The notes: a model not told the origin generated them from the letters alone. Counted from the stretch's first letter, positions 40,668 to 63,216 are shown. The stretch is 64,000 nucleotides of DNA from Anaeramoeba ignava BMAN (GCA_028826165.1 JAPDFW010000097.1:124001-188000), one strand, 5' to 3'. Translations and numbers: made by a program.

Positions 40668-43600
40668 ATGTTTTTAAAAAAAAATAAAAAAGCTTTTAAA
40701 GATTGTAAGGCAAACAATATTGATGGAATTGAACATTTTTTGGAAAACGGAGGAAAAGTTAATCTAAAAAATGAAAAATCAGAAACTCTTTTGCATTTGG
40801 CTTGTCAAATTGAAGATCCAAATCAAAACTTAATTGAAATTGTCAAATTACTCATAGATTATAAAGCAGATGTTAATGCCACAACAAACAAAAAATTAAC
40901 ACCTTTACATTTTGCTTGTCAAAGTCAAAATCCAAATGCAATTGAAATTATTATTCATCTTATTGCAAATGGAGCAACAAAACATAATAAAAACAAAGAC
41001 GAAGAAACTCCTTTGCATTTTGCCTGTCAAAAGTCAAAATCCAAATGCAGTTGAAATTGTTAAATTCCTTGTTTCTAATAAAGCAGCAGTCAATGTCAAA
41101 AACAAAGATCAAGAAACTCCTTTGCATTTTGCCTGTAAAAGTCAAAATCCAAATGCAGTTGAAATTGTTAAATCACTTCTTGAAAAAGGAGCAGATATCA
41201 ATGCCAAAAATAAAGAAGAAGAAACCCCTTTGCATTTAGCTTGTGGAAATCAAAATCCAAATCCACTTGAAGTTGTCAAATTCCTTGTTGAAAGAAAAGC
41301 TGATTTTTTTTCCAAAAATAAAAAAACTTATCTGCCTATCCATTTTGCTTGTCAAAGTCAGAATCCAAATGCAATTGATATTGTGAGATTTTTAATTGAG
41401 AATGGAGCTAATGTCAATGCCCCAACAAAAGTCAACACAACTCCTTTGCACTTGGCTTGTCGAAACAAAAATGAAAAATCATTTGAAATTGTGAAGTTTC
41501 TTGTTGAAAAAGGAGCAAATGTGAATTTACCAACAAACATAAATCAAAAAGCATTGCATTGCGTTTGTTATAGCGAAACCCAAAATGAAAAATCATTTGA
41601 GATTGTGAAGTTTCTTGTTGAAAAAGGAGCTTCTGTTAATGTGAAAACCTTGTATGGAAAAGAAACACCTTTGCACTATGCTTGTCAAAGGAATTCATTT
41701 GAAATTGCCAAATTTTTGATTGAAAAAAAAATCGATATTAATGCTGTAAACGATAAAAAGGAAACACCTTTAATTATGCTTTGCAGAAACAAAGATCTGG
41801 ACGGAATTGAAATTATCTCACTTCTTCTTGAAAATGGAGCAAATGTGAATCTAAGAAATAACTCTCTAAATTCACCTTTACATTATCTTTGTCACAACAA
41901 AAGTCCAAATGCAGTTAAAATTATCGAATTTCTCATTCAAAAAGGAGCATCTCTTAATGCCAAAAATGAAACAGGAAATACTCCTTTGCATTTCATTTGT
42001 ATGGATGACAAAAACCCAAAATCATTTGAAATCATTAACTTGCTAATTCAAAGTGGGGCTCAACCTGATATCAAAAATAATAGCGGCGAAACACCTCTAC
42101 AAATCGTTTTCCAAAAAAGTCATGAGGATTTCGATAAAATTTTCAAGCTTCTTATTGAGAAAACCTCTGATATTAATTGGAAAACAAAAGTCAATGAACA
42201 AACACTTTTACATTTTGTTTGCCAAAGAATAAACCCAGATTCAGTTGATATTGTTAGAATCTTGATCCAAAAAAATTCAGATGTGAATTCTAAGGATACC
42301 ACAGATACAACACCGCTACATTATGCTTGCAAACAAGAAAAATCAAATGAGGTTGTTAAACTACTTATTGAAAATGGAGCAAAAGTAAATGTGAAAAACA
42401 ACAAAAAAGAGACACCTTTACATTATGCTTCTCTCAATTCAAACTGCAGCGAAAATGTGAAGTATCTAATTGAAAAAAAAGCCAAAATCAATGAAGCAAG
42501 TGATGGGAAGCAAACTCCTTTGCATTATGCTTGCAATTTGAAAGAAATCCCAATTGAGATTGTGAAACTACTTATTGAAAATGGAGCAAACGTAAATGTT
42601 AAAAATAATAGAAAAGAGACTCCTTTACATTATGTTTGTCGGAATTCGAAATCAATTGAAGCTGTAAAATGCCTAATTGAAAAAAAAGCAAAACTTAATT
42701 GCAAAAATATCTACAAACAAACACCACTACATTATGCTTGTCAATCTAAGAACATAAACCTTGAGGTTGTGAAATTACTTGTCCAAAATGGGGCAAAGGT
42801 GAATGCCAAAACAAATATCAAGTCTACTCCTTTAGATAATGTAAGTATAAAAGAAAATGGACTAGAAGTCGCTCAATTTCTTGTGGCAAATGGTGCTCAA
42901 ATAAAAAAAAAGCCAGGCGACCAACAAAACCTCCTTCATTTTGCTTGTAATCAAGATAAATCACTTGAATTTGTGAAAATTCTTGTTGAAAGAGGTATTG
43001 ATGTTAATGAAAAAAATTATAAGAATGAAACACCTTTGCATATTCTTTGTGGAAAATTAATCAAGTCTGATTCAAAAGAAGTGATGGAATATCTTTTGGA
43101 AAAAGGCGCAAATATTCATCGCAGAAACACAAAAGGAGAAACACCTTTGTTGATTAGTTGCAATCATTCACTTAGTCTTACTAAATTTCTCGTGGAAAAA
43201 GGTGCTAACATAAATGCAGCAAACACAGAAAAACAGACAGCTTTGCATATCGCTTGCCAAAAAAATTATTTGCATTCAATTGTTCAATATTTGATTGAAA
43301 AAGGAATTGATATTAATCTCAAGGATAGAAACGGTCAAACAGCACTTGATATAACACTAGAGAAAAACAACGAGAAAGCAACTCGTCTTCTTTTGATGAA
43401 TGATGCTCTTTGGATTTATTTACAAGAAAAAAAATTGATTCCTCAGACATTGGTTCCTTTAATAAAACAAATCTATTCGTTCAATTATGATTTCCTTAAT
43501 TTGCTAAATTCAGAAGATAATTTTTCTGATTTGACAATTGAATCATTTGATCATAGCAAATTCAATGCTCACAAAATGATTATTCTCTTAAGATTGGATA

Positions 43601-44311
43601 ATGACAAGACGCTTTTCCAAAAATTTATTGATATTTGCTATCAAAAAAAATCAAAAAAAGAAGTGGAAACTGTTTTACATTTTCTTTATACTGGATTTTT
43701 TGATTTGAGGAAAATAACATATGGAACGACAAACAAAGATCTGGAAGAAAAACAAAAGCAAGTTACAGATTTCCTCAAGGAAATTGAATTACATTCAGAT
43801 TGGATTGAATCAAAAAAAGGAAGAAAAGGCGATAAAAAAGATTCTCAAAAATTTTATCCCCAAAAAGGAACCACAACAATCAGAAATCTGGAAGAAAAAG
43901 AAAAGCAAGTTACAGATTTCCTCAAGGAAATTGGCTTAGATTCGAAATGGATTGAATCAAAAAGGAAGAAAAGGGATTATAAAAGATTATGAAAAATTAT
44001 ATCTGGAAGAAGAAACAAAAGATTTTAGGATAATTTGTGAAGAAAAAGAAATTAAAGTTCATAAATTAATATTAATACTCAGAAGTGAGTTATTTAAAGG
44101 AATGTTTCTAAATGTTCAGGATTCCTCAAACAAAGTTCATGATTATTCAAACAAATCTTTTGAAACAATTCATCAATTAATTTATTTCTTTTATCATGAT
44201 GAATTTGAAAAAGAGCACATAAGAAAAAACAATATTGATGAACTTCAAGATGCAAAAGATTATTATCAATTAAATGAAAATTCAATAATTGATTTATTTG
44301 TCAAGAAATGA
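40668..44311 (+). CDS. Ankyrin-repeat (~25 repeats) protein with C-terminal tandem BTB/POZ domains (frameshifts near 41030 and 43960)
   Basis: Repeated TPLHFAC...EIVKFLVEKGA.VN, then SDLTI...FNAHKMII..R and TKDF.I......VHKLIL..RSELFKGMF. Confidence 0.9.
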
Positions 44312-44399
44312 AGTTTCGAAAGAAGATAATATCTTTATTTTTTTAATTTTTTGAAATGAAGAAAAAAAAGAGAAAGAAAAAGGTTTTTTAATTTTAATT

Positions 44400-46206
44400 T
44401 TAATTTTGATTATTAAATTTCTTAATTAATAAATCAAATAAATTTGGATTTGTTTGATTTAATTGAAAATAATCAATTCCAATTTTAATTTCATTAATAA
44501 TTTCTTGTGTAATTTCAATTCCATTTTTAATTTGATTTGAATAAATCCAATATTCAAATATTTGAAATGATTCTTCACTTAATTCACTATAATCTGTAAC
44601 TTTATTTGATTTATCTTCTGTTACAGATAAAAACATTCCTCGATATAATTCACTTCTCATTATTAATATTAATTTTAGGAAATTTATATTTCTTTTCTTT
44701 TCTTTCAATTATAAAATCTTTTTCATTTTCATTTTCATTTAAATAAATTCTTTTCATTGTTTCTTCTATTTTTTCATTTGAATTTATAATTTCTTTAATT
44801 TCAGAATATAATATTGGATTTATTTTGGAACTGTTTGAATAAATCATTTCAAATATTTGATTTGATTCTTTAATTGATTTTTTTGAAATAATTTCTTTAA
44901 GTTTTTCATTTTCATTTTGATTTTGATTTAATCTATATTTCAATATTAATTTATGAGCTGATATTATTTCTCCATTTTCGGTTTTAAATGAAATATTACA
45001 AAATTCTTTTCTTCTAAATAATTTTATCAAATCTTCTTCAAGATTGGAAAAAGAAGGAGGAGAATAATAAAGAAATGATCTGTAAAAACTATCACAAAAA
45101 ATATGATAATTAGAAATATCTTCATTAAATCTTAATTTAGGAAGTTCAATTTGAATTGGAATAAAATGATTATTTGTATCTCCAGTTCCTAATTGACCAT
45201 AATCATTCCATCCAAATCCAATTAATTTTGAATTGTATGTTAACATCAAAGTATGGGAATATCCAACAGAAAAATCAAGAATATTATCATCATTTTCAAA
45301 TAAATATGATTTGATTTCAGTAAATTTATAAGTATTTTGGTTTTTTCCAAGTCCATTATATTGATGATGACCACATGAATAAAGTTTTCTTTTTGGATTT
45401 TCATTTTCATCTTCAATCAAGATTATTGAATTATAAAATCCACATTGAATATCAATTATTTTGCCTTTTGGAATATTTTGGATTTTGGTTAATTTTTGGA
45501 TTTTTGATTCTTCTTTTCTTGATTCTCCTAATCCGAGTTGGCCAAATTCATTATATCCACATCCAAATAATTCTTGATTTGAATTTAAAAGAAAAACATG
45601 TTGTGAAGAATTTCCTGAAAATATTTTAGAAACATTTTTCATCATTAAAATTGGTTTTTCTTCTTTTTTCCATCTTTGAATTGATTCAAAACCAAGTTGA
45701 CCATAATTATTTGAACCAATTCCATAAGCGTTTTGATTTGAAGTTAATAAGTAAACTGATTGAGCACAACAAACAATATCTTCAATTATTCTATCATTTG
45801 TATTTTCAATTAATGATGAAATATTGATAAATTCATTTAGATTTTTTGAATTAATATCTCCTTTTACAAATACATTTCCTTCTTTTGTTAAAATAGCTTC
45901 ATTTTGAACGCCAATAGTTACTTTTTGAATATTTTCTTCAATTTGGATTTTTGAAGGATTTTGATTTGAATCTGTGAAATATTCTAAACTTAAATATTCT
46001 ATTGCTTTTCCATTTTTGAAAAGGAAAATTGTTGATAATATTCCTGATGAAATTTGTTTAATTTCATTTTCATTTTCATTTTCATTTTGATTTTGATTTT
46101 GATTTTGATTTTCAAATTTAAATTGAATTGGTTTTGTTATCATAAAAGATTTATTTTTAATAAGTTTTGGCTTTTGATTTTGACCAAAAAATAAAATTTC
46201 ATTCAT
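44400..46206 (-). CDS. RCC1 beta-propeller + tandem BTB protein, copy 1 (frameshift near 44675)
   Basis: G.N.YGQLG.G RCC1 repeats; FC.ISF......[11 protein letters not shown]; [15 protein letters not shown]. Confidence 0.88.
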
Positions 46207-46259
46207 TTTTGAAAAAGAAAAAAAATGAAAAAATGAAAAAATGAAAATGAAAAAATGGA

Positions 46260-48914
46260 TTAAATATCCAAATCATTTTGAAGATGTTTTTGTTCTTCTT
46301 TGTTTTGATTTTTTGTTCTTTTTCTTTTTTTCTTCTCATAGAAAATAATTCCAATAATAAATGCTGAAATAACAATAATAGGAATAATTATTCCAATAAT
46401 TATTGCTGTTGTTTTTGTTGAATTATCACCAGGTTCATTTGTTGTTGATATTGTAATTGAAGTTGTTGAATTAATTCCTGAATATTCATTAAATGAACAA
46501 TTTAAATCAGCTGATGAATAAATTGAAATTTCATAATAATCTTCTCCTTTTAATCCTAGAACTGAATAATATGTTGTTAAATTTGATAAACAAATTGATG
46601 TTGAATTATAAGTAAATGAATATGCTTTTAATCCACTTGATAAAATTAATGGATCCCAATTACATTCAAATCCATTAATTAATGAATTACAATTTAATGA
46701 AGTAATATTTCCTAATTTAGCTCTTGTTGAAATAATTGAACTAGGTAATCCTAAATATGGTGTTTCACAATTTAAATCTGCACATCCTCTAATTGAAATA
46801 TTATATTCAATATTTCCTGATATTCCACTTATCATTCCAATTACTTCATTTCCACTTAAATAAAGAGATGTGAATTTTTCCCAATTTGTTCCATTATCAA
46901 GTGAAATTGAATAATTATTTGCATTTGTTAATTTTGTGAAATTAAATTCAATTTCTTCAATTTTGGAAATTGTTTCATAAATTGTTGGAGAAGTTAAATT
47001 ATCAGTTGTAATTGAAGTTGATGAAATATATCCACATTTTCCATTTGAATTACATGCTGATATATTGATTTGATATTCTTGATTTGGGAATTGAACTTTA
47101 AATTGTTGATTTGATGATATTGGTTGATAATTTCCTGAATCATTTTGATAAATTGATTGATAAGTAAAATTATAATAAAATGGAATTGAACAATTAATTG
47201 GTTGATTCCAATTACAATTAATATCAATTGAATATGAAATTGAACATGTTAAATTTGTAACTTCTCCAAATATTAATGAAATTGATGATTCAACAGGTTC
47301 TCCTTTATCATCTCCTTCACATTCATGTGTTCTACATCCACAAATTGAAATATTATAATCATTTTCACATTCAAAATTATTCAAAAAATAATCAAGTGAA
47401 GAATTATCAACTGAAATGAAAGATATTAAATCAGGTTGAGATTGAATAAAATAAGAAAGATTATAATGATTAAGATGAGCAATTCCTTCATTGATCTGAA
47501 CATTTGGATAATTCCAAGTAACATTAATTGAATAATTTGAAGGATTTGATAATTGGAAATCTTTTACAGAATCAATTTTTGTTGTTAAATTAATGAAAGA
47601 AGAAGATTCACCACATTTCATTGTTTCATTATCACAAGCTTTGATTTGAATTGGATAATATTCATTTCCAGTAATATTATCATAAATTGAATAATTAAAT
47701 TGTTGATAATAAACATTCTCATCTTTAAGAATTGGATAATCAATATCAATCCAATCATATCCATAATTAATTTGATAAATCAAAGTTAAAGAAAATTCAA
47801 TTTTATCCCAATAACAATCAAATGATGAAAACAAAGATGAACAATTAACAATATTAACTTGAGGAATTAAACTAGCTTCATAAACAAAAACTCGATTTAC
47901 TTCATTAGCTCCAATAACAGTAAAATTCCCATAAATTGAATTACGATATCCAAAATTTAAAACTGAATTGTTTGTCAAATTTTTTTCAAGATTCCAATTT
48001 GTTCCATTATATCTGTAAATAAATACTTGTTTTTCACCATAGGTTCCAATAACAATAACATTTCCATAAATTGAAACAAAATATCCAAAATATGGAATTG
48101 ATTCACTCAAAATTTGTTCAAGATTCCAAATTGTTCCATTATATCTGTAAATAAATGTTTGATTTGAACCATAATTTCCAACAACAATAACATCTTCATA
48201 AACTGAAACACTCCATCCAAAATATGGAACTGATTCACTCAAAATTTGTTCAAGATTCCAAATTGATCCATTATATCTGTAAATAAATGTTTGATTTCCT
48301 TCATAACCTCCAATAACAATAACATCTTCATAAATTGAAACAGGAAATCCAAAATATGGAACTGATTCACTCAAAATTTGTTCAAGATTCCAAATTGATC
48401 CATTATATCTGTAAACAAATGTTTGATTTGCTTTATAATCTCCAACAACAGTAACATTTCCATAAACTGCAACACATCCTGAATATAATTCAGTTGAGTC
48501 ATTCAAATGTTGTTCTTGATTCCAAATTGATCCATTATATCTGTAAATAAATGCTTCATTTGGACAAATCGAACCAATAACAATAACATCTTCATAAATT
48601 GAAACACTCGATCCAAAATCTGAAACTGAAGATTCATTCAAAGTTTGTTCAAGTTCAAAATTTGTTCCATTATATCTGTAAATAAATACTTCTCTTGTTG
48701 GTGGAGATCCAATAACAAGAACATTTTTATAAATTGAAACAAAATATCCAAAATATAAATCGGAAGATCCATTAAATTGGTTTATTAAATTCCAAACCCA
48801 AGCTTCATCTAGCAAAGAATAATATTTTGTTGTTTCTATTTCTTTTAGAATTGATGATGAAATTGATTGAACTAAGAAAATATTGAAAATTAAGAAAAAG
48901 AAAATTAATTTCAT
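46260..48914 (-). CDS. Type I surface protein: signal peptide, FG-GAP-like propeller, several FN3-like domains, TM helix, short basic tail
   Basis: Seven ~39-aa repeats YFG.xVSIY.DVIVIG; W..P...I..YNLSY and Y.ISI.AC FN3 patterns; TM AIIIGIIIPIIVISAFIIGIIFY followed by KKKRKR. Confidence 0.85.
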   Translation of the reverse strand: MKLIFFFLIFNIFLVQSISSSILKEIETTKYYSLLDEAWVWNLINQFNGSSDLYFGYFVSIYKNVLVIGSPPTREVFIYRYNGTNFELEQTLNESSVSDFGSSVSIYEDVIVIGSICPNEAFIYRYNGSIWNQEQHLNDSTELYSGCVAVYGNVTVVGDYKANQTFVYRYNGSIWNLEQILSESVPYFGFPVSIYEDVIVIGGYEGNQTFIYRYNGSIWNLEQILSESVPYFGWSVSVYEDVIVVGNYGSNQTFIYRYNGTIWNLEQILSESIPYFGYFVSIYGNVIVIGTYGEKQVFIYRYNGTNWNLEKNLTNNSVLNFGYRNSIYGNFTVIGANEVNRVFVYEASLIPQVNIVNCSSLFSSFDCYWDKIEFSLTLIYQINYGYDWIDIDYPILKDENVYYQQFNYSIYDNITGNEYYPIQIKACDNETMKCGESSSFINLTTKIDSVKDFQLSNPSNYSINVTWNYPNVQINEGIAHLNHYNLSYFIQSQPDLISFISVDNSSLDYFLNNFECENDYNISICGCRTHECEGDDKGEPVESSISLIFGEVTNLTCSISYSIDINCNWNQPINCSIPFYYNFTYQSIYQNDSGNYQPISSNQQFKVQFPNQEYQINISACNSNGKCGYISSTSITTDNLTSPTIYETISKIEEIEFNFTKLTNANNYSISLDNGTNWEKFTSLYLSGNEVIGMISGISGNIEYNISIRGCADLNCETPYLGLPSSIISTRAKLGNITSLNCNSLINGFECNWDPLILSSGLKAYSFTYNSTSICLSNLTTYYSVLGLKGEDYYEISIYSSADLNCSFNEYSGINSTTSITISTTNEPGDNSTKTTAIIIGIIIPIIVISAFIIGIIFYEKKKRKRTKNQNKEEQKHLQNDLDI

Positions 48915-49168
48915 TTTTTGCTTTTTTTTTTTTTTTAAAACGAAATTGAAAGAAAAAAAATGATTTCTTTAAAATCTAAAACAATTTTCTGGAACTTTTT
49001 TTTTTGATTTTAATTTTAATTTTAATTTTGATTTTAATTTTAATTTTAATTTCAATTTTAAATTTAATTTTAATTTTGATTTTGAATTTTAATTTTAATT
49101 TTAATTTTAAATTTGAATTTTAATTTTGATTTTAATTTTAATTTTAATTTTGATTTTGAATTTTAATT

Positions 49169-50950
49169 TTAATTTTGATTATTAAATTTCTTAATTAATA
49201 AATCAAATAAATTTGGATATGTTTGATTTAATTGAAAATAATCAATTCCAATTTGAATTTCATCGATAATTTCTTGTGTAATTTCAATTTCATCTTTAAT
49301 TTGATTTGAATAAATCCAATATTCTAATATTTGAAATGATTTATTACTTAATTCACTATAATCTGTAACTTTATTTGATTTATCATTTGTTACAGATAAA
49401 AACATTCCTCGATATAATTCACTTCTCATTATTAATATTAATTTGGGAAATTTATATTGTTTTTCTTTTCTTTCAATTATAAAATCTTTTCCATTTTCAT
49501 TTTCATTTAAATAAATTCTTTTCATTGTTTCTTCTATTCTTTCATTTGAATTTATAATTTCTTTAATTTCAGAATATAATATTGGATTTATTTTGGAATT
49601 GTTTGAATAAATCATTTCAAATATTTGATTTGATTCTTTAATTGATTTTTTCGAAATAATTTCTTGAAGTTTTTCAATTTCATCTTGATTTTGATTTAAT
49701 CTATATTTCAATATTAATTTATGAGCTGATATTATTTCTCCATTTTCTGTTTTAAATGAAATATCACAAAATTCTTTTCTTTCAAATAATTTTATCAAAT
49801 CTTCTTCAAGATTGGAAAAAGAAGGAGGAGAATAATAAAGAAATGATCTGTAAAAACTATCACAAAAAATATGATAATTAGAAATATCTTCATTAAATCT
49901 TAATTTAGGAAGTTCAATTTGAATTGGAATAAAATGATTATTTGTATCTCCAGTTCCTAATTGACCATATTCATTCCATCCAAATCCAATTAATTTTGAA
50001 TTGTATGTTAAAATCAAAGTATGGGAATATCCACAAGAAAAATCAAGAATATTATCATCATTTTCAAATAAAGATGATTTGATTTCAGTAAATTTATAAG
50101 TATTTTGATTTTGACCAAGTCCATTATATCGATAATGACCACATGAATAAAGTTTTCTTTTTGCTTTATCATCTTCAATCAAGATTATTGAATGATAAAA
50201 TCCAGATTTTATATCAATTATTTTGCCTTTTGGAATATTTTGGATTTTGGTTAATTTTTGGATTTTTGATTCTTCTTTTCTTGATTCTCCTAATCCAAGT
50301 TGGCCAAATTCATTATCTCCACATCCAAATAATTCTTGATTTGAATTTAAAAGAAAAGCATGTTGTGAAGAATTTCCTGAAAATATTTTAGAAACATTTT
50401 TCATCATTAAAATTGGTTTTTCTTCTTTTTTCCATCTTTGAATTGATTCAAAACCAAGTTGACTATATTCATTTGAACCAATTCCATAAACATTTTGATT
50501 TGAAGTTAATAAGTAAACTGATTGAGCACAACAAACAACATCTTCAATTATTCTATCATTTTTATCTTCAATTAATGATGAAATATTGATAAATTCTTTT
50601 GAATTTTTTGGATTAATATCTTTTCCTTTGGCAAATACATTTCCTTCTATTGTTAAAATAGCTTCATTTTCAACACCAACAGTTGCTTTTTGAATATTTT
50701 CAATTTGAATTTTTAAAGGATTTTGATCTGAATCTGTGAAATATTCTAAACTTAAATATTCTATTGCTTTTCCATTTTTGAAAAGGAAAATTGTTGATAA
50801 TATTCCTGATGAAATTTGTTTAATTTCAATTTCATTTTCATTTTCATTTTCATTTTCAAATTTAAATTGAATTGGTTTTGTTATCATAAAAGATTTATTT
50901 TTAAAAAAAACTGGATTTTCATTTGAACCAAAAAATATAATTTCATTCAT
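49169..50950 (-). CDS. RCC1 + tandem BTB protein, copy 2 (intact, 593 aa)
   Basis: Same motifs as copy 1. Confidence 0.92.
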   Translation of the reverse strand: MNEIIFFGSNENPVFFKNKSFMITKPIQFKFENENENENEIEIKQISSGILSTIFLFKNGKAIEYLSLEYFTDSDQNPLKIQIENIQKATVGVENEAILTIEGNVFAKGKDINPKNSKEFINISSLIEDKNDRIIEDVVCCAQSVYLLTSNQNVYGIGSNEYSQLGFESIQRWKKEEKPILMMKNVSKIFSGNSSQHAFLLNSNQELFGCGDNEFGQLGLGESRKEESKIQKLTKIQNIPKGKIIDIKSGFYHSIILIEDDKAKRKLYSCGHYRYNGLGQNQNTYKFTEIKSSLFENDDNILDFSCGYSHTLILTYNSKLIGFGWNEYGQLGTGDTNNHFIPIQIELPKLRFNEDISNYHIFCDSFYRSFLYYSPPSFSNLEEDLIKLFERKEFCDISFKTENGEIISAHKLILKYRLNQNQDEIEKLQEIISKKSIKESNQIFEMIYSNNSKINPILYSEIKEIINSNERIEETMKRIYLNENENGKDFIIERKEKQYKFPKLILIMRSELYRGMFLSVTNDKSNKVTDYSELSNKSFQILEYWIYSNQIKDEIEITQEIIDEIQIGIDYFQLNQTYPNLFDLLIKKFNNQN

Positions 50951-50984: not shown

Positions 50985-51257
50985 GAATTTTAATTTTAAT
51001 TTTAATTTTGATTTTAATTTTAATTTTAATTTTAATTTTAATTTTAATTTTAATTTTAATTTTAATTTTGATTTTAATTTTAATTTTAATTTCAATTTTA
51101 ATTTTAATTTTAATTTTAATTTTAATTTTAATTTTAATTTTAATTTTAATTTTGATTTTGATTTTAATTTTGATTTTGATTTTGATTTTAATTTTGATTT
51201 TAATTTGAATTTGAATTTAATTTTAATTTTAATTTTAATTTTTTTTAATTTTAATTT
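50985..51257. repeat. (TTTTAA/TTTTGA)n tract between RCC1-BTB copies; similar tracts at ~48995-49168, ~53075-53162, ~55631-55645
   Basis: Visible; reads (AAAATT)n on the coding strand immediately after each copy's stop. Confidence 0.9.
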
Positions 51258-53039
51258 TAATTTCTTTGATCTTTTCTAAATTTTTCCTGAGTAAATAAAT
51301 GAAATAAATTTGGATATGTTTGATTTAATTGAAAATAATCAATTTTTGTTTAATTTCATCAATAATTTCTTGTGTAATTTCAATTCCATCTTTAATTTGA
51401 TTTGAATAAATCCAATATTCAAATATTTGAAATGATTTATTACTTAATTCACTATAATCTGTAACTTTATTAGATTTATCTTCTGTTACAGATAAAAACA
51501 TTCCTCGATATAATTCAATTCTCATTATTAATATTAATTTAGGAAATTTATATTGTTTTTCTTTTCTTTCAATTATAAAATCTTTTTCTTTTTCTTTTTC
51601 ATTTTCATTTAAATAAATTCTTTTCATTGTTTCTTCTATTTTTTCATTTGAATTTATAATTTCTTTAATTTCAGAATATAATTTTGGATTTGTTTTGGAA
51701 TTATTTGAATAAATCATTTCAAATATTTGATTTGATTCTTTAATTGATTTATTTGAAATAATTTCTTGAAGTTTTTCATTTTGATTTTGATTTAATCTAT
51801 ATTTCAATATTAATTTATGAGCTGATATTATTTCTCCATTTTCGGTTTTAAATGAAATATCACAAAATTCTTTTCTTCTAAATAATTTTATCAAATCTTC
51901 TTCAAGATTGGAAAAAGAAGGAGGATAATAATAAAGAAATGATTTGTTAAATCCACAAAGAACACGATAATTAGAAATATAGAATTTTAATTTAGGAAGT
52001 TCAATTTGAATTGGAATTGATTGTTTTTTTGTATCTCCAGTTCCTAATTGACCATATTCATTCCATCCAAATCCTATTAATTTCCCTTTAGATGTTAAAA
52101 TCAAAGTATGAGCATTTCCAATAGAAAAATCAAGAATATTATCATCATTTTCAAATAAAGATGATTTGATTTCAGTAAATTTATAAGTATTTTGGTTTTG
52201 ACCAAGTCCATTATATTCATGCCTTCCACATGAATAAAGTTTTCTTTTTGGATTTTCATTTTCATCTTCAATCAAAATTATTGAATGAGTAGCTCCACAT
52301 TGAATATCAATTATTTTGCCTTTTGGAATATTTTGGATTTGATTTAATTGCTGAATTGCTTGGATAGCTGTCATTCCTAATCCAAGTTGACCATAAAGAT
52401 TAGATCCGCATCCAAATAATTGTTGTTTTGAATTTAAAAGAAAAACAAATTCTGAAGTATTTCCTGAAAATATTTTAGAAACATTTTTCATCATTAAAAT
52501 TGGTTTTTTTTTTTTTTTAAGTGTTTTATAATCAAAATCAAGTTGACCATAAGCATTTAAACCAATTCTATAAGCATTTCTTTTTGAAGTTAATAAGTAA
52601 ATTGAATTACTTCCAGAAACAACATCTTGAATTATTCTATCATTTGTATCTTCAATTAATGATGAAATATTGATAAATTCATTTGTGTTTTTTGTATTAA
52701 TAACTTTTCCTTTGGCAAATACATTTCCTTCTATTGTTAAAATAGCTTCATTTTGATAACCAGCAGATACTTTTTGAATATTTTCTTCAATTTGGATTTT
52801 TGAAGGATTTTGTTTTGAATCTTTTTCATTTAAATATTCTATTGCTTTTTCATTTTCAAAAAGGAAAATTGTTGAAAAATTTGATGATGAAATTTGTTTA
52901 ATTTGTTTTCATTTTCATTTTCATTTTCATTTTCATTTTCATTTTCAAATTTAAATTGAATTGGTTTTGTTATTTTATTTGGTTCATTTTTGAAAAGTTT
53001 TGGAAATTGATTTCTTCCAAAAAATAAACAATCATTCAT
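51258..53039 (-). CDS. RCC1 + tandem BTB protein, copy 3 (several frameshifts; assembly error or pseudogene)
   Basis: ORFs 52839-53039 and 51325-52494 plus the intervening sequence are collinear with copy 4. Confidence 0.8.
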
Positions 53040-53162
53040 TTTTGAAAAAGAAAAAAATGAAAAAATAATTTTTGAATTTTAATTTTAATTTTGATTTTAA
53101 TTTTGATTTTAATTTTAATTTTAATTTTAATTTTAATTTTAATTTTAATTTTAATTTTAATT

Positions 53163-54944
53163 TTAATTTAATTTTAATTTTTTCTTTTGTCTTTGATCTT
53201 TTCTAAATTTCCTGAGTAATAAATGAAATAAATTTGGATATGTTTGATTTAATTGAAAATAATCAATTTTTTGTTTAAGTTCTGTTATAATTTCTTGTGT
53301 AATTTCAATTCCATCTTTAATTTGATTTGAATAAATCCAATATTCTAATATTTGAAATGATTCTTCACTTAATTCACTATAATCTGTAACTTTATTTGAA
53401 GTATCTTCTGTTACAGATAAAAACATTCCTCGATATAATTCACTTCTCATTGTTAATATTAATTTAGGAAATTTATATTGTTTTTCTTTTCTTTCAATTA
53501 TAAAATCTTTTTCATTTTCATTTTCATTTAAATAAATTCTTTTCATTGTTTCTTCAATTTTTTCATTTGAACTTATAATTTCTTTAATTTCTGAATATAA
53601 TATTGGATTTATTTTGGAATTGTTTGAATAAATCATTTCAAATATTTGATTTGATTCTTTAATTGATCTTTTTGAAATAATTTCTTGAAGTTTTTCATTT
53701 TGATTTTGATTTAATCTATATTTCAATATTAATTTATGAGCTGATATTATTTCTCCATTTTCGGTTTTAAATGAAATATCACAAAATTCTTTTCTTCGAA
53801 ATAGTTTTATCAAATCTTCTTCAAGATTGGAAAAAGAAGGAGGAGAATAATAAAGAAATGATTTGTTAAATCCACAAAGAACACGATAATTAGAAACATA
53901 GAATTTTAATTTAGGAAGTTCAATTTGAATTGGAATTGATTGTTTTTTTGTATCTCCAGTTCCTAATTGACCATATTCATTCCATCCAAATCCAATTAAT
54001 TTCCCTTTAGATGTTAAAATCAAAGTATGAGCATTTCCAATAGAAAAATCAAGAATATTATCATCATTTTCAAATAAAGATGATTTGATTTCAGTAAATT
54101 TATAAGTATTTTGGTTTTGACCAAGTCCATTATATCGATAATATCCACATGAATAAAGTTTTCTTTTTGGATTTTCATTTTGATTTTCAATCAAGATTAT
54201 TGAATGATAAAATCCACATTGAATATCAATTATTTTACCTTTTGGAATATTTTGGATTTTGATTAATTTTTGGATTTCTGTTTCTTTTCTTGATTCTCCT
54301 AATCCAAGTTGGCCAAATTCATTATATCCACATCCAAATAATTCTTGATTTGAATTTAAAAGAAAAACATGTTGTGAAGTATTTCCTGAAAATATTTTAG
54401 AAACATTTTTCATCATTAAAATTGGTTTTTCTGTTTTTTTAATTATTTCAGAATCAAATCCAAATTGACCATAATCATTTGAACCAATTCCATAAGCATT
54501 TTGATTTGAAGTTAATAAGTAAATTGAACTATCTCCAGAAACAATATCTTGAATTATTCTATCATTTTTATCTTCGATTAATGATGAAATATTGATAAAT
54601 TCATTTGTGTTTTTTGGATTTATATCTTCTCCTTTTGCAAATACATTTCCTTCTTTTGTTAAAATAGCTTTGTTTCGATAACCAGCAGTTACTTTTTGAA
54701 TATTTTCTTCAATTTGGATTTTTGAAGGATTTTGTTTTGAATCTTTTTCATTTAAATATTCTATTGCTTTTCCATTTTTAAAAAGGAAAATTGTTGAAAA
54801 ATTTCCTGATGAAATTTGTTTAATTTGTTTTTCATTTTCATTTTCATTTTCAAATTTAAATTGAATTGGTTTTGTTATTTTATTTGATTCATTTTTGAAA
54901 AGTTTTGGAAATTGATTTCTTCCAAAAAATATAATTTCATTCAT
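53163..54944 (-). CDS. RCC1 + tandem BTB protein, copy 4 (intact, 593 aa)
   Basis: Same motifs as copy 1. Confidence 0.92.
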   Translation of the reverse strand: MNEIIFFGRNQFPKLFKNESNKITKPIQFKFENENENEKQIKQISSGNFSTIFLFKNGKAIEYLNEKDSKQNPSKIQIEENIQKVTAGYRNKAILTKEGNVFAKGEDINPKNTNEFINISSLIEDKNDRIIQDIVSGDSSIYLLTSNQNAYGIGSNDYGQFGFDSEIIKKTEKPILMMKNVSKIFSGNTSQHVFLLNSNQELFGCGYNEFGQLGLGESRKETEIQKLIKIQNIPKGKIIDIQCGFYHSIILIENQNENPKRKLYSCGYYRYNGLGQNQNTYKFTEIKSSLFENDDNILDFSIGNAHTLILTSKGKLIGFGWNEYGQLGTGDTKKQSIPIQIELPKLKFYVSNYRVLCGFNKSFLYYSPPSFSNLEEDLIKLFRRKEFCDISFKTENGEIISAHKLILKYRLNQNQNEKLQEIISKRSIKESNQIFEMIYSNNSKINPILYSEIKEIISSNEKIEETMKRIYLNENENEKDFIIERKEKQYKFPKLILTMRSELYRGMFLSVTEDTSNKVTDYSELSEESFQILEYWIYSNQIKDGIEITQEIITELKQKIDYFQLNQTYPNLFHLLLRKFRKDQRQKKKLKLN

Positions 54945-55595: not shown

Positions 55596-55645
55596 TTTGA
55601 AAAAGAAAAAAATGAAAAAATGATTTTGGAATTTTAATTTTAATT

Positions 55646-57408
55646 TTAATTTTGATTATTAAATTTGTTAATTAATAAATCAAATAAATTTGGATTTGTT
55701 TCATTTAATTGAAAATAATCAATTCCAATTTGAATTTCATTAATTAATTTCTTGTGTAATTTTAATTTCATCTTTAATTTGATTTGAATAAATCCAATAT
55801 TCAAATATTTGAAATGATTTATTACTTAATTCACTATAATCTGTAACTTTATTAGATTTATCTTCTGTTACAGATAAAAACATTCCTCGATATAATTCAC
55901 TTCTCATTATTAATATTAATTTTGGAAATTTATATTTCTTTTCTTTTCTTTCAATTATAAAATCTTTTTCATTTTCTTTTTCATTTAAATAAATTCTTTT
56001 CATTGTTTCTTCAATTTTTTCATTTGAATTTATAATTTCTTTAATTTCAGAATATAATTTTGGATTTATTATTCTGTTTGAATAAATCATTTCAAATATT
56101 TGATTTGATTCTTTAATTAATTTTTTTGAAATAATTTCTTGAAGTTTTTCAATTTCATTTTCATTTTGATTTAATCTATATTTCAATATTAATTTATGAG
56201 CTTCAATTATTTCTCCATTTTCTGGTTTTAAATGAAATATCACAAAATTCTTTTCTTTGAAACAGTTTTATCAGATCTTCTTCAAGATTAGAAAAAGAAG
56301 GAGAATAATAAAGAAATGATTTTCGATATCCACAAGAAATATGATAATTAGAAATATTTTCATTAAATCTTAATTTAGGAAGTTCAATTTGAATTGGAAT
56401 TAATTTGTTATTCGTATCTCCAGTTCCTAATTGACCATAATCATTACCTCCAAATACTATTAATTTTGATTTGGAAGTTAAAATCAAAGTATGATAACTT
56501 CCAACAGAAAAATCAAGAATATTATCATCATTTTCAAATAAAGATGATTTGATTTCAGTAAATTTATATGTATTTTCATATTTGCCAAATCCATTATATT
56601 CAGAATATCCACATGAATAAAGTTTTCTTTTTGGATTTTCATTTTCATTTTCAATCAAGATTATTGAATGAGACATTCCACATTGAATATCAATTATTTT
56701 ACCTTTTGGAATATTTTGGATTTTGATTAATTTTTGGATTTGTGTTGATCTTCCTAATCCAAGTTGACCATAAGCATTATCACCGCATCCAAATAATTCT
56801 TGATTTGGATTTAAAAGAAAAACATGAAATGAAGTATTTCCTGAAAATATTTTAGAAACATTTTTCATCATTAAAATTGGTTTTTTTGTTTTTTTAAGTG
56901 TTTTAGAATCAAAACCAAATTGACCATAAGCATTTGAACCAATTCCATAAGCATTTTGATTTGAAGTTAATAAGTAAATTGAATTATCTCCAGAAACAAC
57001 ATCTTGAATTATTCTATCATTTGTATCTTCAATTAATGATGAAATATTGATAAATTCATTTGTATTTTTTGTATTAATATATTTTCCTTTGGCAAATACA
57101 TTTCCTTCTATTGTTAAAATAGCTTCATTTCGAAAACCAACAGTTACTTTTTGAATATTTTCTTCAATTTGGATTTTTTCAGGATTTTGTTTTGAATATT
57201 CTAAATATTCTATTGCTTTTCCATTTTTAAAAAGGAAAATTGTTGAAAAATAACTTGATGAAATTTTTTTAATTTGTTTTTCATTTTCATTTTCATTTTC
57301 ATTTTCATTTTCAAATTTAAATTGAATTGGTTTTGTTATTATTGTTTCTGGTTTATTTTTGAAAAGTTTTGGATATTTATTTCTTCCAAAAAATAAAATT
57401 TCATTCAT
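55646..57408 (-). CDS. RCC1 + tandem BTB protein, copy 5 (frameshifts near 56225 and 55745)
   Basis: Likely start MNEILFF at 57408; collinear with the other copies to ...FNNQN*. Confidence 0.85.
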
Positions 57409-57472: not shown

Positions 57473-58592
57473 TCAAAAAAATTTTCTTCCAATAATTCTA
57501 ATTCCAAATTCTTCATATTCTTCTTTTAGAATAAACATATTCCCGAAATTTGATAGTGTAGTTATAATTGAACCACCAATCCAAGTTGAAATTGATCTTT
57601 CTGGAGGAGCAGTAACTTTTAATGACATTGTAAGAGGAGCTAAATATTGAATCTCTTTTCGAAGTCTATCCGCAAATCCTGGAAACTGTGATGAACCACC
57701 TGATAAAATAATATTTCCATATAGAAACCTTCTTATATCAACATCACATTTGCTAATTGATTCATAAATAATTTCATGAATCCCTTTTTCTTCAATTCCA
57801 TTTAAAGAAGGGTTGAACAACATTTCAGGACATTTCAATCTTTCATTTCCTATTGTAAAAAAATCTCCATTCATTGATTCATATTTTTTCTCAATCGATT
57901 TTTTTTCGTTTGCATTTTTCATTTCTTCTTCGAAATCATAGGCAATATAACAAAGTTTTTCTTTGATATCACTGGCGATTTTCCTATCAGAAATCGAAAC
58001 AAATGAATGTCCTCTTTCATTGAGCAATCTCATCAAATATTCAGTCAAATCTCTTCCTCCAATATCCATTTTTTTGGTATGAATTGGGATATTAAACCCT
58101 TCATAAATAGGAACAATATAAGAAACTGTTTCTCCAATATCAGCAACAATTCCTGTTGTTCTTCCTGATGCATAAATTGCCAAAATCGAAGAATTTTCCA
58201 GAAACAATGAAGGAAATCCATATTTTTCAAACATTATTTCAGCCATTTTTTCTCTTTTTGATTTTGGATTTAAAGGTGAATCACTTATTAACAGTGTGTG
58301 ATCTTTTGGATCAATTTTCATTTCCTCATAAAAACAATAATCCCATATTTTTTCCATATAATCAAAATTTGTGATGATTCCTTGGTTTATTGGATATTCC
58401 ATATTTAGATTTTCTCTTTTTTTTTCTGCTTCTTTGCCAATATAATATTTTTTTTCTTCTTTTCTCATTTTTTGTAATCCCAATTTTTGTTGCGAAAATT
58501 GTTTTTGGTTGCTCTTCTCCTCCAATGCCTATTTGTATATTTCTTGATCCGTGATGCAAAACAATTGGCAAATTTAAATCAGAATCATCCAT
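57473..58592 (-). CDS. Divergent actin / actin-like protein, intronless (frameshift near 58462)
   Basis: YPINQGIITNFDYMEKIW, PLNPKSKREKMAEIMFE, YASGRTTGIV.DIG, VPIYEG, GGRDLTEYL, DIKEKLCY, LYGNIILSGG, APPER..STWIGGSI. Confidence 0.9.
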
Positions 58593-58648
58593 TTTTTTGA
58601 TATTTTGTAAAGGAAAAAAATGAAAAAAAAAAATTCAATTTTTTCAGA

Positions 58649-59743
58649 TTTCTAATTAAATTTTATTTATATTTAAGTAATATTTTCAATTTTGAAACCT
58701 ATTTTTGAAATAAAATATAAATAATTTATAAATAATTTATATTTTAAATTTTGGAAATAAATTTAATTAAAATATTTAATAATAAAAATATTAATTTCTA
58801 ATTCAATTTTATTTATGTTTTAAGTAATATTTTCAATTTTAAAATCTATTTTTGAAATAAATTATAAATAATTTATAAATAATTTATATTTTAAATTTTG
58901 GAAATAAAATTAATTAAAATATTTAATAATGAAAATATTAATTTCTAATTAAATTTTATTTATATTTTAATAATATTTTCAATTTTAAAACCTATTTTTA
59001 AAATAAATTATAAATAAATTTATAAATAATTTATATTTTAAATTTTGGAAATAAAATTTAATTAAAATATTTAATAATGAAAATATTAATTTCTAATTAA
59101 ATTTTATTTATATTTTAGTAATATTTTCAATTTTGAAACCTATTTTTAAAATAAAATATAAATAATTTATAATTAATTTATATTTTAAATTTTGGAAATA
59201 AAATTAATTAAAATATTTAATAATAAAAATATTAATTTCTAATTCAATTTTATTTATATTTTAAGTAATATTTTCAATTTTAAAATCTATTTTTGAAATA
59301 AAATTATAAATAATTTATAAATTAATTTATATTTTAAATTTTGGAAATAAAATTAATTAAAATATTTAATAATTAAAAATATTAATTTCTAATTCAATTT
59401 TATTTATATTTTAATAATATTTTCAATTTTAAAATCTATTTTTAAAATAAATTATAAATAAATTATAAATAATTTATATTTTAAATTTTGGAAATAAATT
59501 TAATTAAAATATTTAATAATAAAAATATCAATTTCTAATTAAATTTTATTTATATTTAAGTAATATTTTCAATTTTAAATCTATTTTTAAAATAAGTTAT
59601 AAATAAATTATAATTAATTTATATTTTAAATTTTGGAAATAAAATTAATTAAAATATTTAATAATAAAAATATTAATTTCTAATTCAATTTTATTTATAT
59701 TTTAATAATATTTTCAATTTTAAAATCTATTTTTGAAATAAAT
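58649..59743. repeat. Intergenic tandem satellite, ~145-150 bp unit, ~7.5 copies
   Basis: The TCTAATT anchor recurs at 58651, 58797, 58944, 59092, 59238, 59388, 59534 and 59679. Confidence 0.95.
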
Positions 59744-59837
59744 TAGCCAAAATCCTTTTTTCAAATATTTTTTGCTTTTTGAAATTTTTAGATCAAAAAA
59801 GAAAAATTTTTTTTTCATTTTTTTTTCATTTTCTAAA

Positions 59838-62800
59838 ATGGATCTTTTCACAATTATTGAACAAAATCAAATTGAAAAATTAAAAGAAATTAAATTTATT
59901 GAAGAAAAAGAACCACAAACAAAACAAATTCAAGTTCAAAATTCAAAAAAAGAAAAAGAAAAAGAAATCATATTAAATTTTGCTATTATAAAAAAATCAT
60001 CAAAAGAAATGATTGAATTATTAATTGCCAAAGGAGTCAAAACACATTTACAAGATCAAAACGGAAGAAATTCATTGCATATTGCAATTATAAATAATTC
60101 ACCAATTGAAATACTTGATTTATTAATTCAAAAGGGAATTTCAGTCAATTCAACAGATAAACAAAATCAAACATGTTTACATTTTGCTTGTCAAAATAAT
60201 TCATCAATAAAAGTGATTAAATATTTAATTTCAAAAGGAGGTGATATCAATGCAAGAACAAGACAAAATCAAACCATTTTGCATTATGCTTGCAGGAATC
60301 AATCACTTGAAATAATCAAATACCTTGTTTCCAAAAAACTGAATATTCATTCAAAAACAAACTACAATGAAACATTGTTGCATTATGCTTGCCAACATAA
60401 TTCGATTGAAGTGATTGAATATTTGCTTGAAAAAGGACTTGATGTTAATGCAAAAACATTTGGAAAAGAAACAGCTTTGCATTATGCTTGCCAACATAAT
60501 TCGATTGAAGTGATTGAATATTTGCTTGAAAAAGGACTTGATATTAATGAAAAAACAAATTTTAATCAATCAACATTGCATTTGGCATGTCAATATAGTT
60601 CATCAATAGAAGTGATTAAATATTTGATTCAAGAAGGAGTTGATATCAATGCAACAACAAACTCAAACCAAACAGCTTTGCATTATGCTTGTCAAAAAAA
60701 TTCCTCCATCGAAATTCTTAAATATCTTGTTGAGAAGGGAATTGATATTAATGCAAAAACAGCAACTAATCAAAATGCTCTGTTTTATGCTTGTCAAAGC
60801 AAATTATCAATTGAAATAATCAAATTTTTAGTTGAAAAAGGAATTGATGTAAATGCGAAAACAAATTTAAATGAAACCGTTTTGCATATTGCTTGTCAAC
60901 ATAAATTACCATTTGAAACAATCAAATTTTTAGTTGAAAAAGGAATAGATATCAATGCACAAACAAATCAACAAAAAACAGCTTTACATTTTGCTTGTCA
61001 ATATAATGCATCTTTTGAAATTATTAAATTTTTAGTTGAAAAAGGAATAGATATCAATGCACAAACTCGAACAGAACAAACAGCTTTACATTTTGCTTGT
61101 CAATATAATTCATCTTTTGAAATTATTAAATTTTTAATTGAAAAGGGAATAGATATCAAATGCAAAAGCAAGACAAAATCAAACTGTTTTACATTATCTT
61201 TGTCAAAACCCAAATCTCTCATTTGAAGCAATCAAGTTTTTAGTTGAAAAGGGAATTGATATAAATTGCAAAACCAATCAAAATCAAACTGTTTTACATT
61301 ATCTTTGTCAAAATCCAAATGCTCCATTTGAAGTAATCAAATTTTTAGTTGAAAAAGGAATTGATGTAAATGCGAAAACAAATGAAAATGAAACCGTTTT
61401 GCATATTGCTTGTCAACATAAATTACCATTTGAAACAATCAAATTTTTAGTTGAAAAAGGAATAGATATCAATGCACAAACATCTTTCAAACAAACAGCT
61501 TTACATTTTGCTTGTCAATATAATGCATCTTTTGAAATTATCAAATTTTTAATTGAAAAGGGAATAGATATCAATGCAGAAAGCAATTTAAAATACACAG
61601 CTTTACATTTAGCCTTTCAAAACGATTCTTCATTTGAAATTATTAAATTATTACTTTACAAAGGAATTGATATTAATGCAAAAGCATTTCACGAAGAAAG
61701 TGTTCTTCATTTTGCATGTCAATTTAATGCTTCAATTGAGATAATCAAGTATTTAGTTGAGAATGGAGTTGATATTAATGCAAAAACAGCAAGTGGAGAA
61801 ACTGCTTTAGATTATCTTTGCTCAAAGAAACCATCCTTTGAAATTATTCAGTATTTAGTTGAGAAAGGAATTGATCTTCATTCAAAATCAAATCACAATC
61901 ATACATCTTTACATCTAGTTTGCCTTAGCAATCCATCATTTGAAATAATTCGTTATTTGATAGAAAAAGGAGTTGATGTAAATACAAAAACAGAAAGAAA
62001 TGAAACAGCTCTTCATTTCGCATGCCAAAGCAATCCATCATTAGATACTATTAAACTCTTGGTTGGAAAAGCGGTTGATATCAATGCAAAAGCATATCAC
62101 AATGAGACAGCTCTTCATTTCGCTTGCCATTATAAACTCTCTTTTGAAATCATCAAATATCTAATTGAAAGTGGAATCGATATTCATGCCAAAACAGACG
62201 CAAATCAAACTGCTCTCCATTATGCTTGCCAAATTAATCCATCATTTGCAGTCGTTGAATATTTAATTTCAAAAGGAATTGATATTAACCTCAAAACAGC
62301 ATCAAATGAAACACCTTTATCCATTTCAATTCAAAATGGAAATCAGAAACTCGTTCAAATTCTATTAAATAACCAAGCCAATTTTTATGATTTACAAGAA
62401 AAAGAAATCTCAAAAGAATTTCTTGAATCCTTTTTACAAGTTTATTCAATCAATGAAGATTTCAGCAATTTCTTCATTTCAGATGATAATTTTCCTGATT
62501 ATAAAATTGAATCAAATGATTTCTTCAAATTTAATGTTCATAAATTAATTCTATTAACAAGATTTGATAATGATGAAACAATTTTACAAAAATTTATTGA
62601 TATTTGCAAAACAAAATCAAAAGAAGAAGTTCAAATTATCCTAAATTTCCTTTACACAGGCTTTCCCAATTTTGGAGAAATTATTGAAAAATTCCAACAT
62701 CAAATTGAAAAAAATTCCCAAAATGATTCAAAATCAAGTTATTTTTGGGGAGGAAGACAATTTGAAGAGCAAAAAACAATTTTGAGAGAAATTGAACAAA

Positions 62801-63216
62801 ACCAAACTAGAATTGAAGATTTTTTCAAACAAATGGGATTTGATTCAAATTGGATTGAATCCAAAAAAGGAAGAAAAGGAATAATAAAAGATCTTCATCA
62901 ATTATATCAAAATGAATCAACAAAAGATTTTACGATAATTGTTGAGGAAAAAGAAATTAAAGCTCATAAATTGATATTAATAATAAGAAGTGAATTATTC
63001 AAAGGAATGTTTCTAAGTGTTCAAGATTCATCAAATCAAGTTCATGATTATTCAAAGAAATCATTTGAAACAATTAATCAATTAATTTATTTCTTCTATC
63101 ACAATGAATTTGATGAAACAAAAGAAATTACAAAAGAAATTATTCAAGAATTTAAAGGTTTAAAAGATTATTTCCAATTAAATCAACATTCCAAAATTGA
63201 TTTTTCAAAATTTTAA
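59838..63216 (+). CDS. Ankyrin-repeat + tandem BTB protein (frameshift near 61160)
   Basis: TALH(F/Y)ACQ...EIIKFLVEKGIDINA repeats; FNVHKLILLTR and KAHKLILIIRSELFKGMF. Confidence 0.9.

Follow-up and report, generated by a model that had tools for sequence, protein, structure and literature searches.

Positions 124001-188000 of contig C98 from the genome of the free-living anaerobic protist Anaeramoeba ignava BMAN (42.8 Mb in 147 contigs), a stretch of 64,000 nucleotides hereafter called the window, contain an array of genes in which one of two kinds of head, an RCC1 propeller or a set of ankyrin repeats, is linked to a homologous C-terminal pair of BTB domains, the twin-BTB tail. This array is one of many local arrays of a superfamily specific to the A. 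ignava lineage, which accounts for at least 1,546 twin-BTB tails in the genome, or about one per 28 kb. The original prediction, made from the sequence of the window, had pictured a variable sensor on a constant tandem-BTB module; that picture holds true on a scale far bigger than guessed. It is in the sensor that diversification is concentrated, as the ratio of nonsynonymous to synonymous substitution rates (dN/dS, or omega) is 0.12 in the tail versus about 2 at the loop sites of the propeller. We see about an even chance that the family is a library of binding proteins carried in the germline, all built on the constant twin-BTB tail and most likely serving as monomeric substrate receptors of the Cullin-3-RING ubiquitin ligase (CRL3).

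Family size and the array in the window

The RCC1-type tails were counted over the whole genome with a 29-nucleotide motif of the second BTB domain (BTB2), allowing up to three mismatches, which gives 1,301 matches and none in a reversed control. These matches lie on most contigs, in same-strand tandem arrays with a spacing of about 2 kb. For the other tail type, a degenerate DNA pattern encoding R-S-[ED]-L-F-[KR]-G-M-F, with the RCC1 type excluded, yields 245 exact matches and again none in the control. The resulting genome-wide total of tail motifs rejects the possibility, raised alongside the original prediction, that the family is small. The approximately 1,300 RCC1-headed copies are young, with a synonymous divergence (dS) of about 0.1, and the older copies, at least 245 in number, mostly carry ankyrin repeats as the head.

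At the protein level, a search with an intact RCC1-headed open reading frame (ORF) of the window recovers 1,080 significant matches, the best 120 of which all belong to A. ignava BMAN (locus tags M0811_) and, the query's own entry aside, are 65-88% identical to it, mostly 77-82%. Automatic names among the matches include "claret isoform a," "btk-binding protein-related," "BTB domain-containing protein," and "regulator of chromosome condensation." The 150 best-scoring protein matches to the RCC1-type tail are all 90-96% identical to the query tail, and a search with the ankyrin-type tail recovers at least 130 full-length matches, which are 54-65% identical to it. When a profile of the tail alignment was searched against 1.84 billion cluster representatives, it matched 1,851 clusters at E <=0.001 and 190 at E <=1e-30; among 20 clusters sampled across the best 150, 18 come from A. 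ignava, one from a spider, and one from a metagenome fragment. The heads seen among 79 representatives are ankyrin repeats (60), RCC1 (10), WD40 (2), G-alpha (2), ARM/ZER1-like (2), and Ras (1). Six of 20 sampled older clusters include a transcriptome-derived (EukProt) member, a hint that older copies are expressed. No relatives of the tail were found in viral contigs (IMG/VR), and a viral origin of the tail was rejected on this ground. The spider entry (P0338, 732 residues, from Oedothorax gibbosus) contains five BTB stretches and is ranked together with the A. ignava tails; this may reflect either a true multi-BTB protein or a contaminant of the spider assembly. In another entry, P0376, a protein of 1,742 residues annotated as a P-type ATPase, the twin-BTB tail lies in mid-protein, possibly as a result of a merged gene model.

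The genome was assembled from Nanopore and Illumina reads, and its 32,108 introns are short and extremely AT-rich (PMC11550330). The 612 foreign genes reported there make up 4.1% of the total, which implies about 14,900 genes. The main text of that paper makes no mention of BTB, RCC1, ankyrin, or ubiquitin; the part of its supplementary material covered here gives neither a count for the RCC1/ankyrin twin-BTB family nor expression values for the family members sampled. Within the same part, Supplementary Data 5C flags RCC1-type proteins of the sister species as possibly foreign.

A tblastn search over the window, in which broken copies were searched piecewise and frameshifted fragments were never merged into repaired proteins, finds five RCC1-BTB copies (c1 to c5), two full-length ankyrin-BTB genes (A1 and A2), and a partial third (A3), with no family member in the first 40 kb:

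40662..44311, + strand: ankyrin-repeat gene A1 with twin-BTB tail, about 1,216 codons (ORFs, Pfam Ank and BTB, tblastn); read in three overlapping ORFs because of a +1 insertion in an A run near 41028 and another near 43965
44400..46206, - strand: RCC1-BTB copy c1, full length, 95.6% nucleotide identity to c2 (ORFs, tblastn); one +1 frameshift near 44676 separates the part with the propeller and the first BTB domain (BTB1) from BTB2
49169..50950, - strand: RCC1-BTB copy c2, intact ORF of 593 residues (Pfam, AlphaFold2 (AF2) propeller, tail model); seven-bladed propeller at residues 1-375, twin-BTB tail at residues 380-593 (window 49172-49813)
51325..53040, - strand: RCC1-BTB copy c3, full-length extent, broken (ORFs, tblastn); an 11-nucleotide insertion near 52920, within a (GAAAAT)n coding repeat, and a -1 frameshift near 51352
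53163..54944, - strand: RCC1-BTB copy c4, intact ORF of 593 residues (Pfam, tblastn); tail at 53205-53846
55661..57408, - strand: RCC1-BTB copy c5, full-length extent (ORFs, tblastn); two +1 frameshifts, near 56223 and 55745
59772..63216, + strand: ankyrin-repeat gene A2 with twin-BTB tail, about 1,148 codons, tail at 62386-63213 (Pfam, tblastn); one +1 insertion in a short A run near 61168
63287..64000, + strand: ankyrin-BTB gene A3, start only, leaving the window (tblastn)

Pfam recognizes an RCC1 propeller and two BTB matches in both intact ORFs, and ankyrin repeats plus BTB in A1 and A2. The tail of A3 falls just past the end of the window, and its BTB2 is 91% identical to that of A2. All five RCC1-headed and two ankyrin-headed genes of the original prediction are present with homologous tails, both peptides it quoted occur in the window translations, and none of the family genes requires an intron, as it had stated. 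It omitted the third ankyrin gene, and only two RCC1 ORFs are uninterrupted: the other three RCC1 copies and both ankyrin genes carry frameshifting indels. At 89-96% nucleotide identity, these broken RCC1 copies have not diverged further than the intact ones, so the frameshifts of the array mark either very recent pseudogenes or residual Nanopore assembly errors. A search for contigs encoding c2 returned nothing on record.

The constant tail and the hypervariable head

The RCC1-type and ankyrin-type tails align across both BTB halves with 32-39% identity, rising to 45-54% in BTB2, where a long conserved block runs through both types. The positions of BTB1 common to both types are F-x-D, H-K-L-I-L, R, and Y. 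The ankyrin-type tail differs in an extra variable linker of 50-70 residues with a W-I-E-S-K-K-G-R-K-G motif. Against the Pfam PF00651 cut-off of 20.5 bits, the RCC1-type tail scores 25.7 bits for BTB1 and 27.8 bits for BTB2, and the ankyrin-type BTB2 scores 52.7-55.7 bits. The ankyrin-type BTB1 falls below the cut-off (19.2 bits in A1, no match in A2), despite which it can be aligned, column for column, to that of the RCC1 type. As a family profile, BTB1 matches the BTB domain of CP190 (E 4e-5).

A model of the tail built on a deep alignment of 112 diverse tails has a mean predicted local distance difference test score (pLDDT) of 95.1 and a predicted template modelling score (pTM) of 0.88; in full-length AF2 runs on a shallow alignment of paralogues only, the tail was unfolded (pLDDT 26-47). 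The modelled BTB1 is degenerate, lacking the third strand and the loop preceding it, and the modelled BTB2 has a complete core, whose last helix (residues 202-213 of 214) closes the chain. Among solved structures, the best matches to the whole tail are two single-chain POZ heterodimers, Miz1-BCL6 (Z 15.7 over 194 residues) and Miz1-Nac1 (Z 15.1 over 188 residues), with a root-mean-square deviation of 4.0 A. Single solved BTB domains reach a Z of 11.6 at most, and BTB2 by itself matches many of them at Z 10.6-11.6. Since the Miz1 heterodimers stand clearly above the single domains, the predicted arrangement of the two BTB domains is an intramolecular pseudo-dimer, a copy within one chain of the classical BTB dimer. 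A literature search found no mention of such a twin-BTB pseudo-dimer. The tail model also superposes on the predicted tandem-BTB modules of LZTR1, RhoBTB3, At2g04740, and BTBD7 (TM 0.74-0.79 over about 205 residues).

The head of the RCC1-type genes scores 92-103 bits with the Pfam RCC1 profile, 80-99 bits with RCC1_2, and 141-165 bits with WD40_RLD, and AF2 models it as seven four-stranded blades at a pLDDT of about 90. Variability was measured in 114 annotated RCC1-BTB paralogues. Mean entropy is 0.19 bit in the tail as opposed to 0.70 in the propeller. It reaches at least 2 bits at 41 sites and at least 2.6 bits at 23, each of the latter with 10-17 residue types. The signatures formed by these 23 sites are distinct in 113 of the 114 paralogues, with a median pairwise difference of 20 sites. 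The composition of the hypervariable sites opposes the A+T mutational bias: Tyr makes up 17.7% of residues there versus 4.0% in the scaffold, Trp 2.0% versus none, and Asp and Glu about 9% each, while Ile, Leu, and Lys are depleted. More broadly, about 40 variable loop positions, grouped in two to three short clusters per blade, are enriched in Tyr, Trp, Asp, Asn, and Ser, a composition of the binding type. Between the two intact copies of the array, c2 and c4, 26 of 40 hypervariable sites are different, as opposed to 15% of the sites elsewhere in the propeller and 10% of those in the tail.

DSSP assignment of the modelled propeller puts the hypervariable sites of each blade in the same three places. 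One is a G-x-x-H hairpin that joins strand b to strand c, another is the set of G-x-N-x positions immediately following strand d, and the third comprises one to three residues that immediately precede strand a. The pattern extends to the strands from the N-terminus with which blade 7 is completed. As a blade of four antiparallel strands has all three places at one and the same end, the hypervariable residues should, by strand topology, form one face of the propeller. The signatures of individual blades are distinct in 108-112 of the 114 paralogues, and the few shared ones belong to pairs that are close overall; in this crude sample test there is no clear reshuffling of blade cassettes, a result that speaks neither clearly for nor clearly against such a process.

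Selection was estimated from 19 full coding sequences with a maximum-likelihood (ML) GY94+F3x4 codon model. By the Nei-Gojobori method, dS is 0.08-0.12 and similar in tail and propeller, so that conservation of the tail does not merely reflect homogenization. The Nei-Gojobori omega of 1.06 for the propeller was set aside as inflated by the 80% A+T codon bias, and the ML estimates were used instead. The ML omega of the tail is 0.12-0.13, and the tail is under purifying selection after duplication. At 31 hypervariable codons of the propeller, omega is 1.9-2.05 (likelihood-ratio test versus omega = 1, 2dlnL = 5.4), suggestive of positive selection. Per-codon tree lengths are 1.3 in the tail, 4.1 in the propeller, and 35.5 at the hypervariable codons. 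On these estimates, dN/dS appears raised in the putative substrate-binding head and not in the tail.

Neighboring genes and microsatellites

The family genes are interspersed with unrelated genes and bounded by hexanucleotide repeats:

39737..40582, - strand: ricin-B-type lectin, outside the family (Pfam)
46260..48914, - strand: FG-GAP/fn3 type I membrane protein, outside the family, between c1 and c2 (Pfam, translation)
57473-58525, - strand: actin-family ORF (Pfam)
49006..49176, - strand: (AAAATY)n hexanucleotide microsatellite directly downstream of c2
50986-51242, 53075-53164, and 55630-55653, - strand: further (AAAATY)n tracts flanking RCC1-BTB units

Besides these, Pfam identifies a Ras-superfamily GTPase gene within the array. 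The lectin, surface receptor, Rac, and altered actin named in the original prediction as tightly packed neighbors are accordingly present as a lectin, the FG-GAP/fn3 protein, a Ras-superfamily GTPase, and an actin-family gene. With one family member per about 28 kb genome-wide, their adjacency to the array has no demonstrated meaning. The actin-family ORF meets the Pfam actin profile from position 32 onward, and its first exon may be missing. An upstream-extended ORF of c5 (to 57516) overlaps it; the start of c5 is likely at 57408.

The RCC1-BTB units are bounded on both sides by same-strand (AAAATY)n tracts of about 100-250 nucleotides. About half of 30 other loci of the family (L001-L030) have at least 60 nucleotides of perfect repeats within 300 nucleotides downstream. 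A related (GAAAAT)n repeat, read as "NENENE," lies within the coding N-terminus of the family, and it is there that an 11-nucleotide slip disrupts c3. These hexanucleotide repeats may drive unequal exchange between copies. Long (AAAATY)n tracts also occur away from any family gene, at window positions 22834-23451 and 27173-27372 (both - strand), and the repeat is therefore not exclusive to the family. The G+C content of the window is 20%; it drops to just 7-14% at positions 1-4000 and 30000-40000, compared with 20-32% in the coding parts.

Possible function and related systems

A connection of the tail with Cullin-3 is suggested by several comparisons. We found one Cul3 orthologue in the genome (P0121, 736 residues, contig C58; query, the database's own protein entry), whose best solved matches are to Cullin-3 (E 4e-119 versus 2e-101 for Cul4). 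The other cullins comprise a tandem Cul1 pair, one Cul1/2-like gene, and four Cul4-like genes; the cullin complement, Cul3 included, lies on contigs C57, C58, C64, C71, C74, and C109 (loci L051-L059). This Cul4 expansion is notable beside the single Cul3 that would serve more than 1,500 BTB proteins. Searched as a profile, BTB2 finds KBTBD4, SPOP, and KBTBD2, all Cul3 adaptors, through their BTB domains (E 3e-12 to 1e-9). An invariant Asp (D523 of c2) aligns, with a one-residue ambiguity, to the Glu in the L-K-E of KBTBD4, which is its phi-x-E contact loop; the corresponding residues are V-Q-D in the ankyrin type and V-T-E-D in the RCC1 type, the acidic residue being Asp, not Glu. The predicted complex of the c2 tail with residues 1-370 of Cul3 scored 0.74 three times, but one unrelated control scored 0.61, so the prediction counts neither for nor against binding. 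RhoBTB (PMC10413933, PMC4931677) and LZTR1 (PMC8154269), in which a head is likewise followed by tandem BTB domains, are Cul3 adaptors, from which we infer by analogy that members of the A. ignava family would dock onto Cul3 and promote ubiquitylation.

If the family is indeed such a library, the variable propeller face of each monomeric receptor would bind one target, and BTB2 would dock the receptor onto the single Cullin-3 for ubiquitylation of that target. The built-in pseudo-dimer would keep more than 1,500 near-identical BTB tails from cross-dimerizing, thereby providing a structural rationale for the twin-BTB design. As to the targets, the guess that comes most naturally is foreign proteins, whether of viruses, intracellular bacteria, or mobile elements, and a role in immunity or symbiont control, as entertained in the original prediction, is speculation. 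A bolder form of the same idea, which we consider less likely than not, is that more than 1,500 monomeric ubiquitin-ligase receptors with an antibody-like propeller face or ankyrin groove, for which the pseudo-dimer is an innovation that lets them share one Cul3, form a cell-autonomous recognition-and-degradation immunity against foreign or selfish proteins. Were this true, eukaryotic microbes would possess a form of cell-autonomous immunity not described in them so far. As the single Cul3 would be a bottleneck for it, expression might be limited to subsets of the family.

Two sets of observations weigh against CRL3 receptors as the explanation. The first concerns the cullin itself. At the contact loop c2 reads V-T-N-D, with Asn rather than Glu before the invariant Asp. 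Moreover, no 3-box or BACK follows BTB2, as positions 1-98 of the 110 in the Pfam BTB profile are covered and nothing thereafter; this is the element that strengthens Cul3 binding in solved adaptors. The missing element, the degeneracy of BTB1, the lack of specificity of the complex prediction, and the need for one Cul3 to serve more than 1,500 adaptors all favor a binder library that works by other means than Cullin-3, with the tail as a scaffold, localization, or effector-docking module and the targets being sequestered, blocked, or relocated. Many BTB proteins, for example the BTB-zinc-finger proteins that dominate the fold matches, are not Cul3 adaptors either. We regard such a library as unlikely, given that the precedents for a head with tandem BTB domains, RhoBTB and LZTR1, are Cul3 adaptors, as are the best BTB2 profile matches, and that an invariant acidic residue occupies the contact-loop position.

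The second set concerns how many copies are functional and how strongly their loops are selected. Three of the five RCC1 copies in the window are broken, and among the 150 copies that score best, a full-length open frame is missing from 44 (29%). EukProt is listed as a source for none of the 116 database-sourced A. ignava RCC1-swarm matches (among the best 120 of 1,080), a weak hint of either low expression or poor transcript assembly. The ML omega of the whole propeller is 0.46-0.48, below 1. The sites with omega above 1 were chosen post hoc by entropy, and 11 of the 19 sequences are common to both sets, so the excess is suggestive rather than formal. Finally, the placement of the hypervariable residues on one face is a topological deduction rather than a coordinate measurement. 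The broken frames, the lack of transcriptome-derived swarm matches, and a whole-propeller omega of 0.47, along with the very young age of the swarm (dS about 0.1) and microsatellite flanks that could drive unequal exchange, would suit an expansion of one RCBTB-like gene, through tandem duplication and ectopic recombination, that was for the most part non-adaptive or selfish ("genomic drift"), with relaxed loops and many copies dead or silent, much as F-box superfamilies have been explained (PMC3030570). We nevertheless consider drift quite improbable. A tail omega of 0.12 at a dS like that of the propeller denotes purifying selection acting after duplication, and the variation is uneven, being confined to defined loop positions in every blade. 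It also enriches Tyr, Trp, Asp, and Glu and depletes Ile, Leu, and Lys in opposition to the AT bias, and omega at the hypervariable sites is about 2. That the propellers are instead catalytic, as RCC1-like guanine nucleotide exchange factors (GEFs) for expanded Anaeramoeba small GTPases with the BTB tail regulating or localizing them, is very improbable. In its favor, RCC1-like domains include GEFs, some protein matches bear names like "claret" or "regulator of chromosome condensation," membrane-trafficking regulators are expanded according to the genome paper (PMC11550330), and the array encloses a Ras-family GTPase gene. Against it, conservation would be expected of a catalytic face, whereas here one face varies from copy to copy almost without exception; a set of about 1,300 distinct GEFs would far exceed any plausible number of GTPases; and ankyrin, WD40, and ARM heads sit on the same tail.

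Returning to the library of inherited CRL3 receptors, the family, if its members are working receptors, would be among the largest inherited recognition repertoires known in any single-celled eukaryote. We know of no case in which an RCC1 propeller serves as a hypervariable binder, and the family would provide a natural propeller-binder library for protein engineering. It bears on the handling of symbionts, prey, and viruses by Anaeramoeba and, more generally, on how a 43-Mb genome devotes more than 5% of its DNA to one gene.

Judged by architecture, the family resembles RCBTB1/RCBTB2 and IBtk (PANTHER "BTK-binding protein-related"), in which an RCC1-like propeller is N-terminal to two BTB domains. 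The likeness is reflected both in the depositors' automatic names and in the protein-language-model neighbors of the family, "Btk-binding protein-related" and "RCC1 and BTB domain-containing protein 1." IBtk contains ankyrin repeats too, and RCBTB1/RCBTB2 and IBtk have been reported to be Cul3 adaptors. However, these are one to few conserved genes per genome, as opposed to about 1,300 near-identical copies with hypervariable loops in A. ignava, where the tail, moreover, stops at the BTB core. A head combined with two BTB domains is also seen in the tandem-BTB Cul3 adaptors LZTR1, RhoBTB1-3, At2g04740/ABTB, and BTBD7, among which the plant protein At2g04740 pairs ankyrin repeats with two BTB domains, and the parallel with RhoBTB extends to a Ras-headed member among the A. 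ignava tails. In contrast to the A. ignava family, these proteins possess BACK or C-terminal extensions and do not form hypervariable multigene families. RhoBTB binds Cul3 via a BTB domain (PMC10413933), namely BTB1, whereas the complete domain in A. ignava is BTB2. Miz1-BCL6 and Miz1-Nac1 (PDB 4U2M and 4U2N) similarly present two BTB folds in one chain as a classical BTB dimer; being engineered tethers of transcription-factor domains with 13-16% identity to the tail, they are informative as to arrangement but not function.

Two further systems offer parallels of a more general kind. In the mammalian antiviral proteins HERC5/HERC6 (PMC7775381), a rapidly evolving RCC1-like propeller is tied to a ubiquitin-type ligase, but the HECT ligase domain lies in the same chain and there are few genes rather than a repertoire. 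The amoeba-associated Chlamydiae (PMC4209131) show a massive lineage-specific expansion of BTB-box and F-box proteins fused to repeat heads, likewise in an amoeba-microbe setting; those, however, are candidate bacterial effectors aimed at the host, whereas the A. ignava family is encoded in the nucleus of the protist itself.

The closest concept is that of the positively selected MATH-BTB and F-box adaptor families of Caenorhabditis and plants. According to PMC4334554, citing Thomas 2006 (Genome Res 16:1017), these are large tandem families of cullin adaptors evolving by birth and death, with positive selection in the substrate-binding and not the cullin-binding domain, for which recognition of foreign proteins has been proposed. 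The A. ignava proteins differ from the MATH-BTB type in that an RCC1 propeller or ankyrin repeats take the place of MATH as the head, and the BTB domain is C-terminal and duplicated into a predicted pseudo-dimer. Their copies correspond to about a tenth of the approximately 14,900 annotated genes, and to our knowledge this copy number is much higher than that of the MATH-BTB and F-box families. If they are working receptors, they would extend cullin-adaptor innate recognition, as proposed for those nematode and plant families, to protists. What sets the A. ignava family apart from those adaptor families is its scale, the RCC1 propeller as a hypervariable scaffold, the C-terminal BTB module with its predicted pseudo-dimeric packing, and its host, a free-living anaerobic protist.

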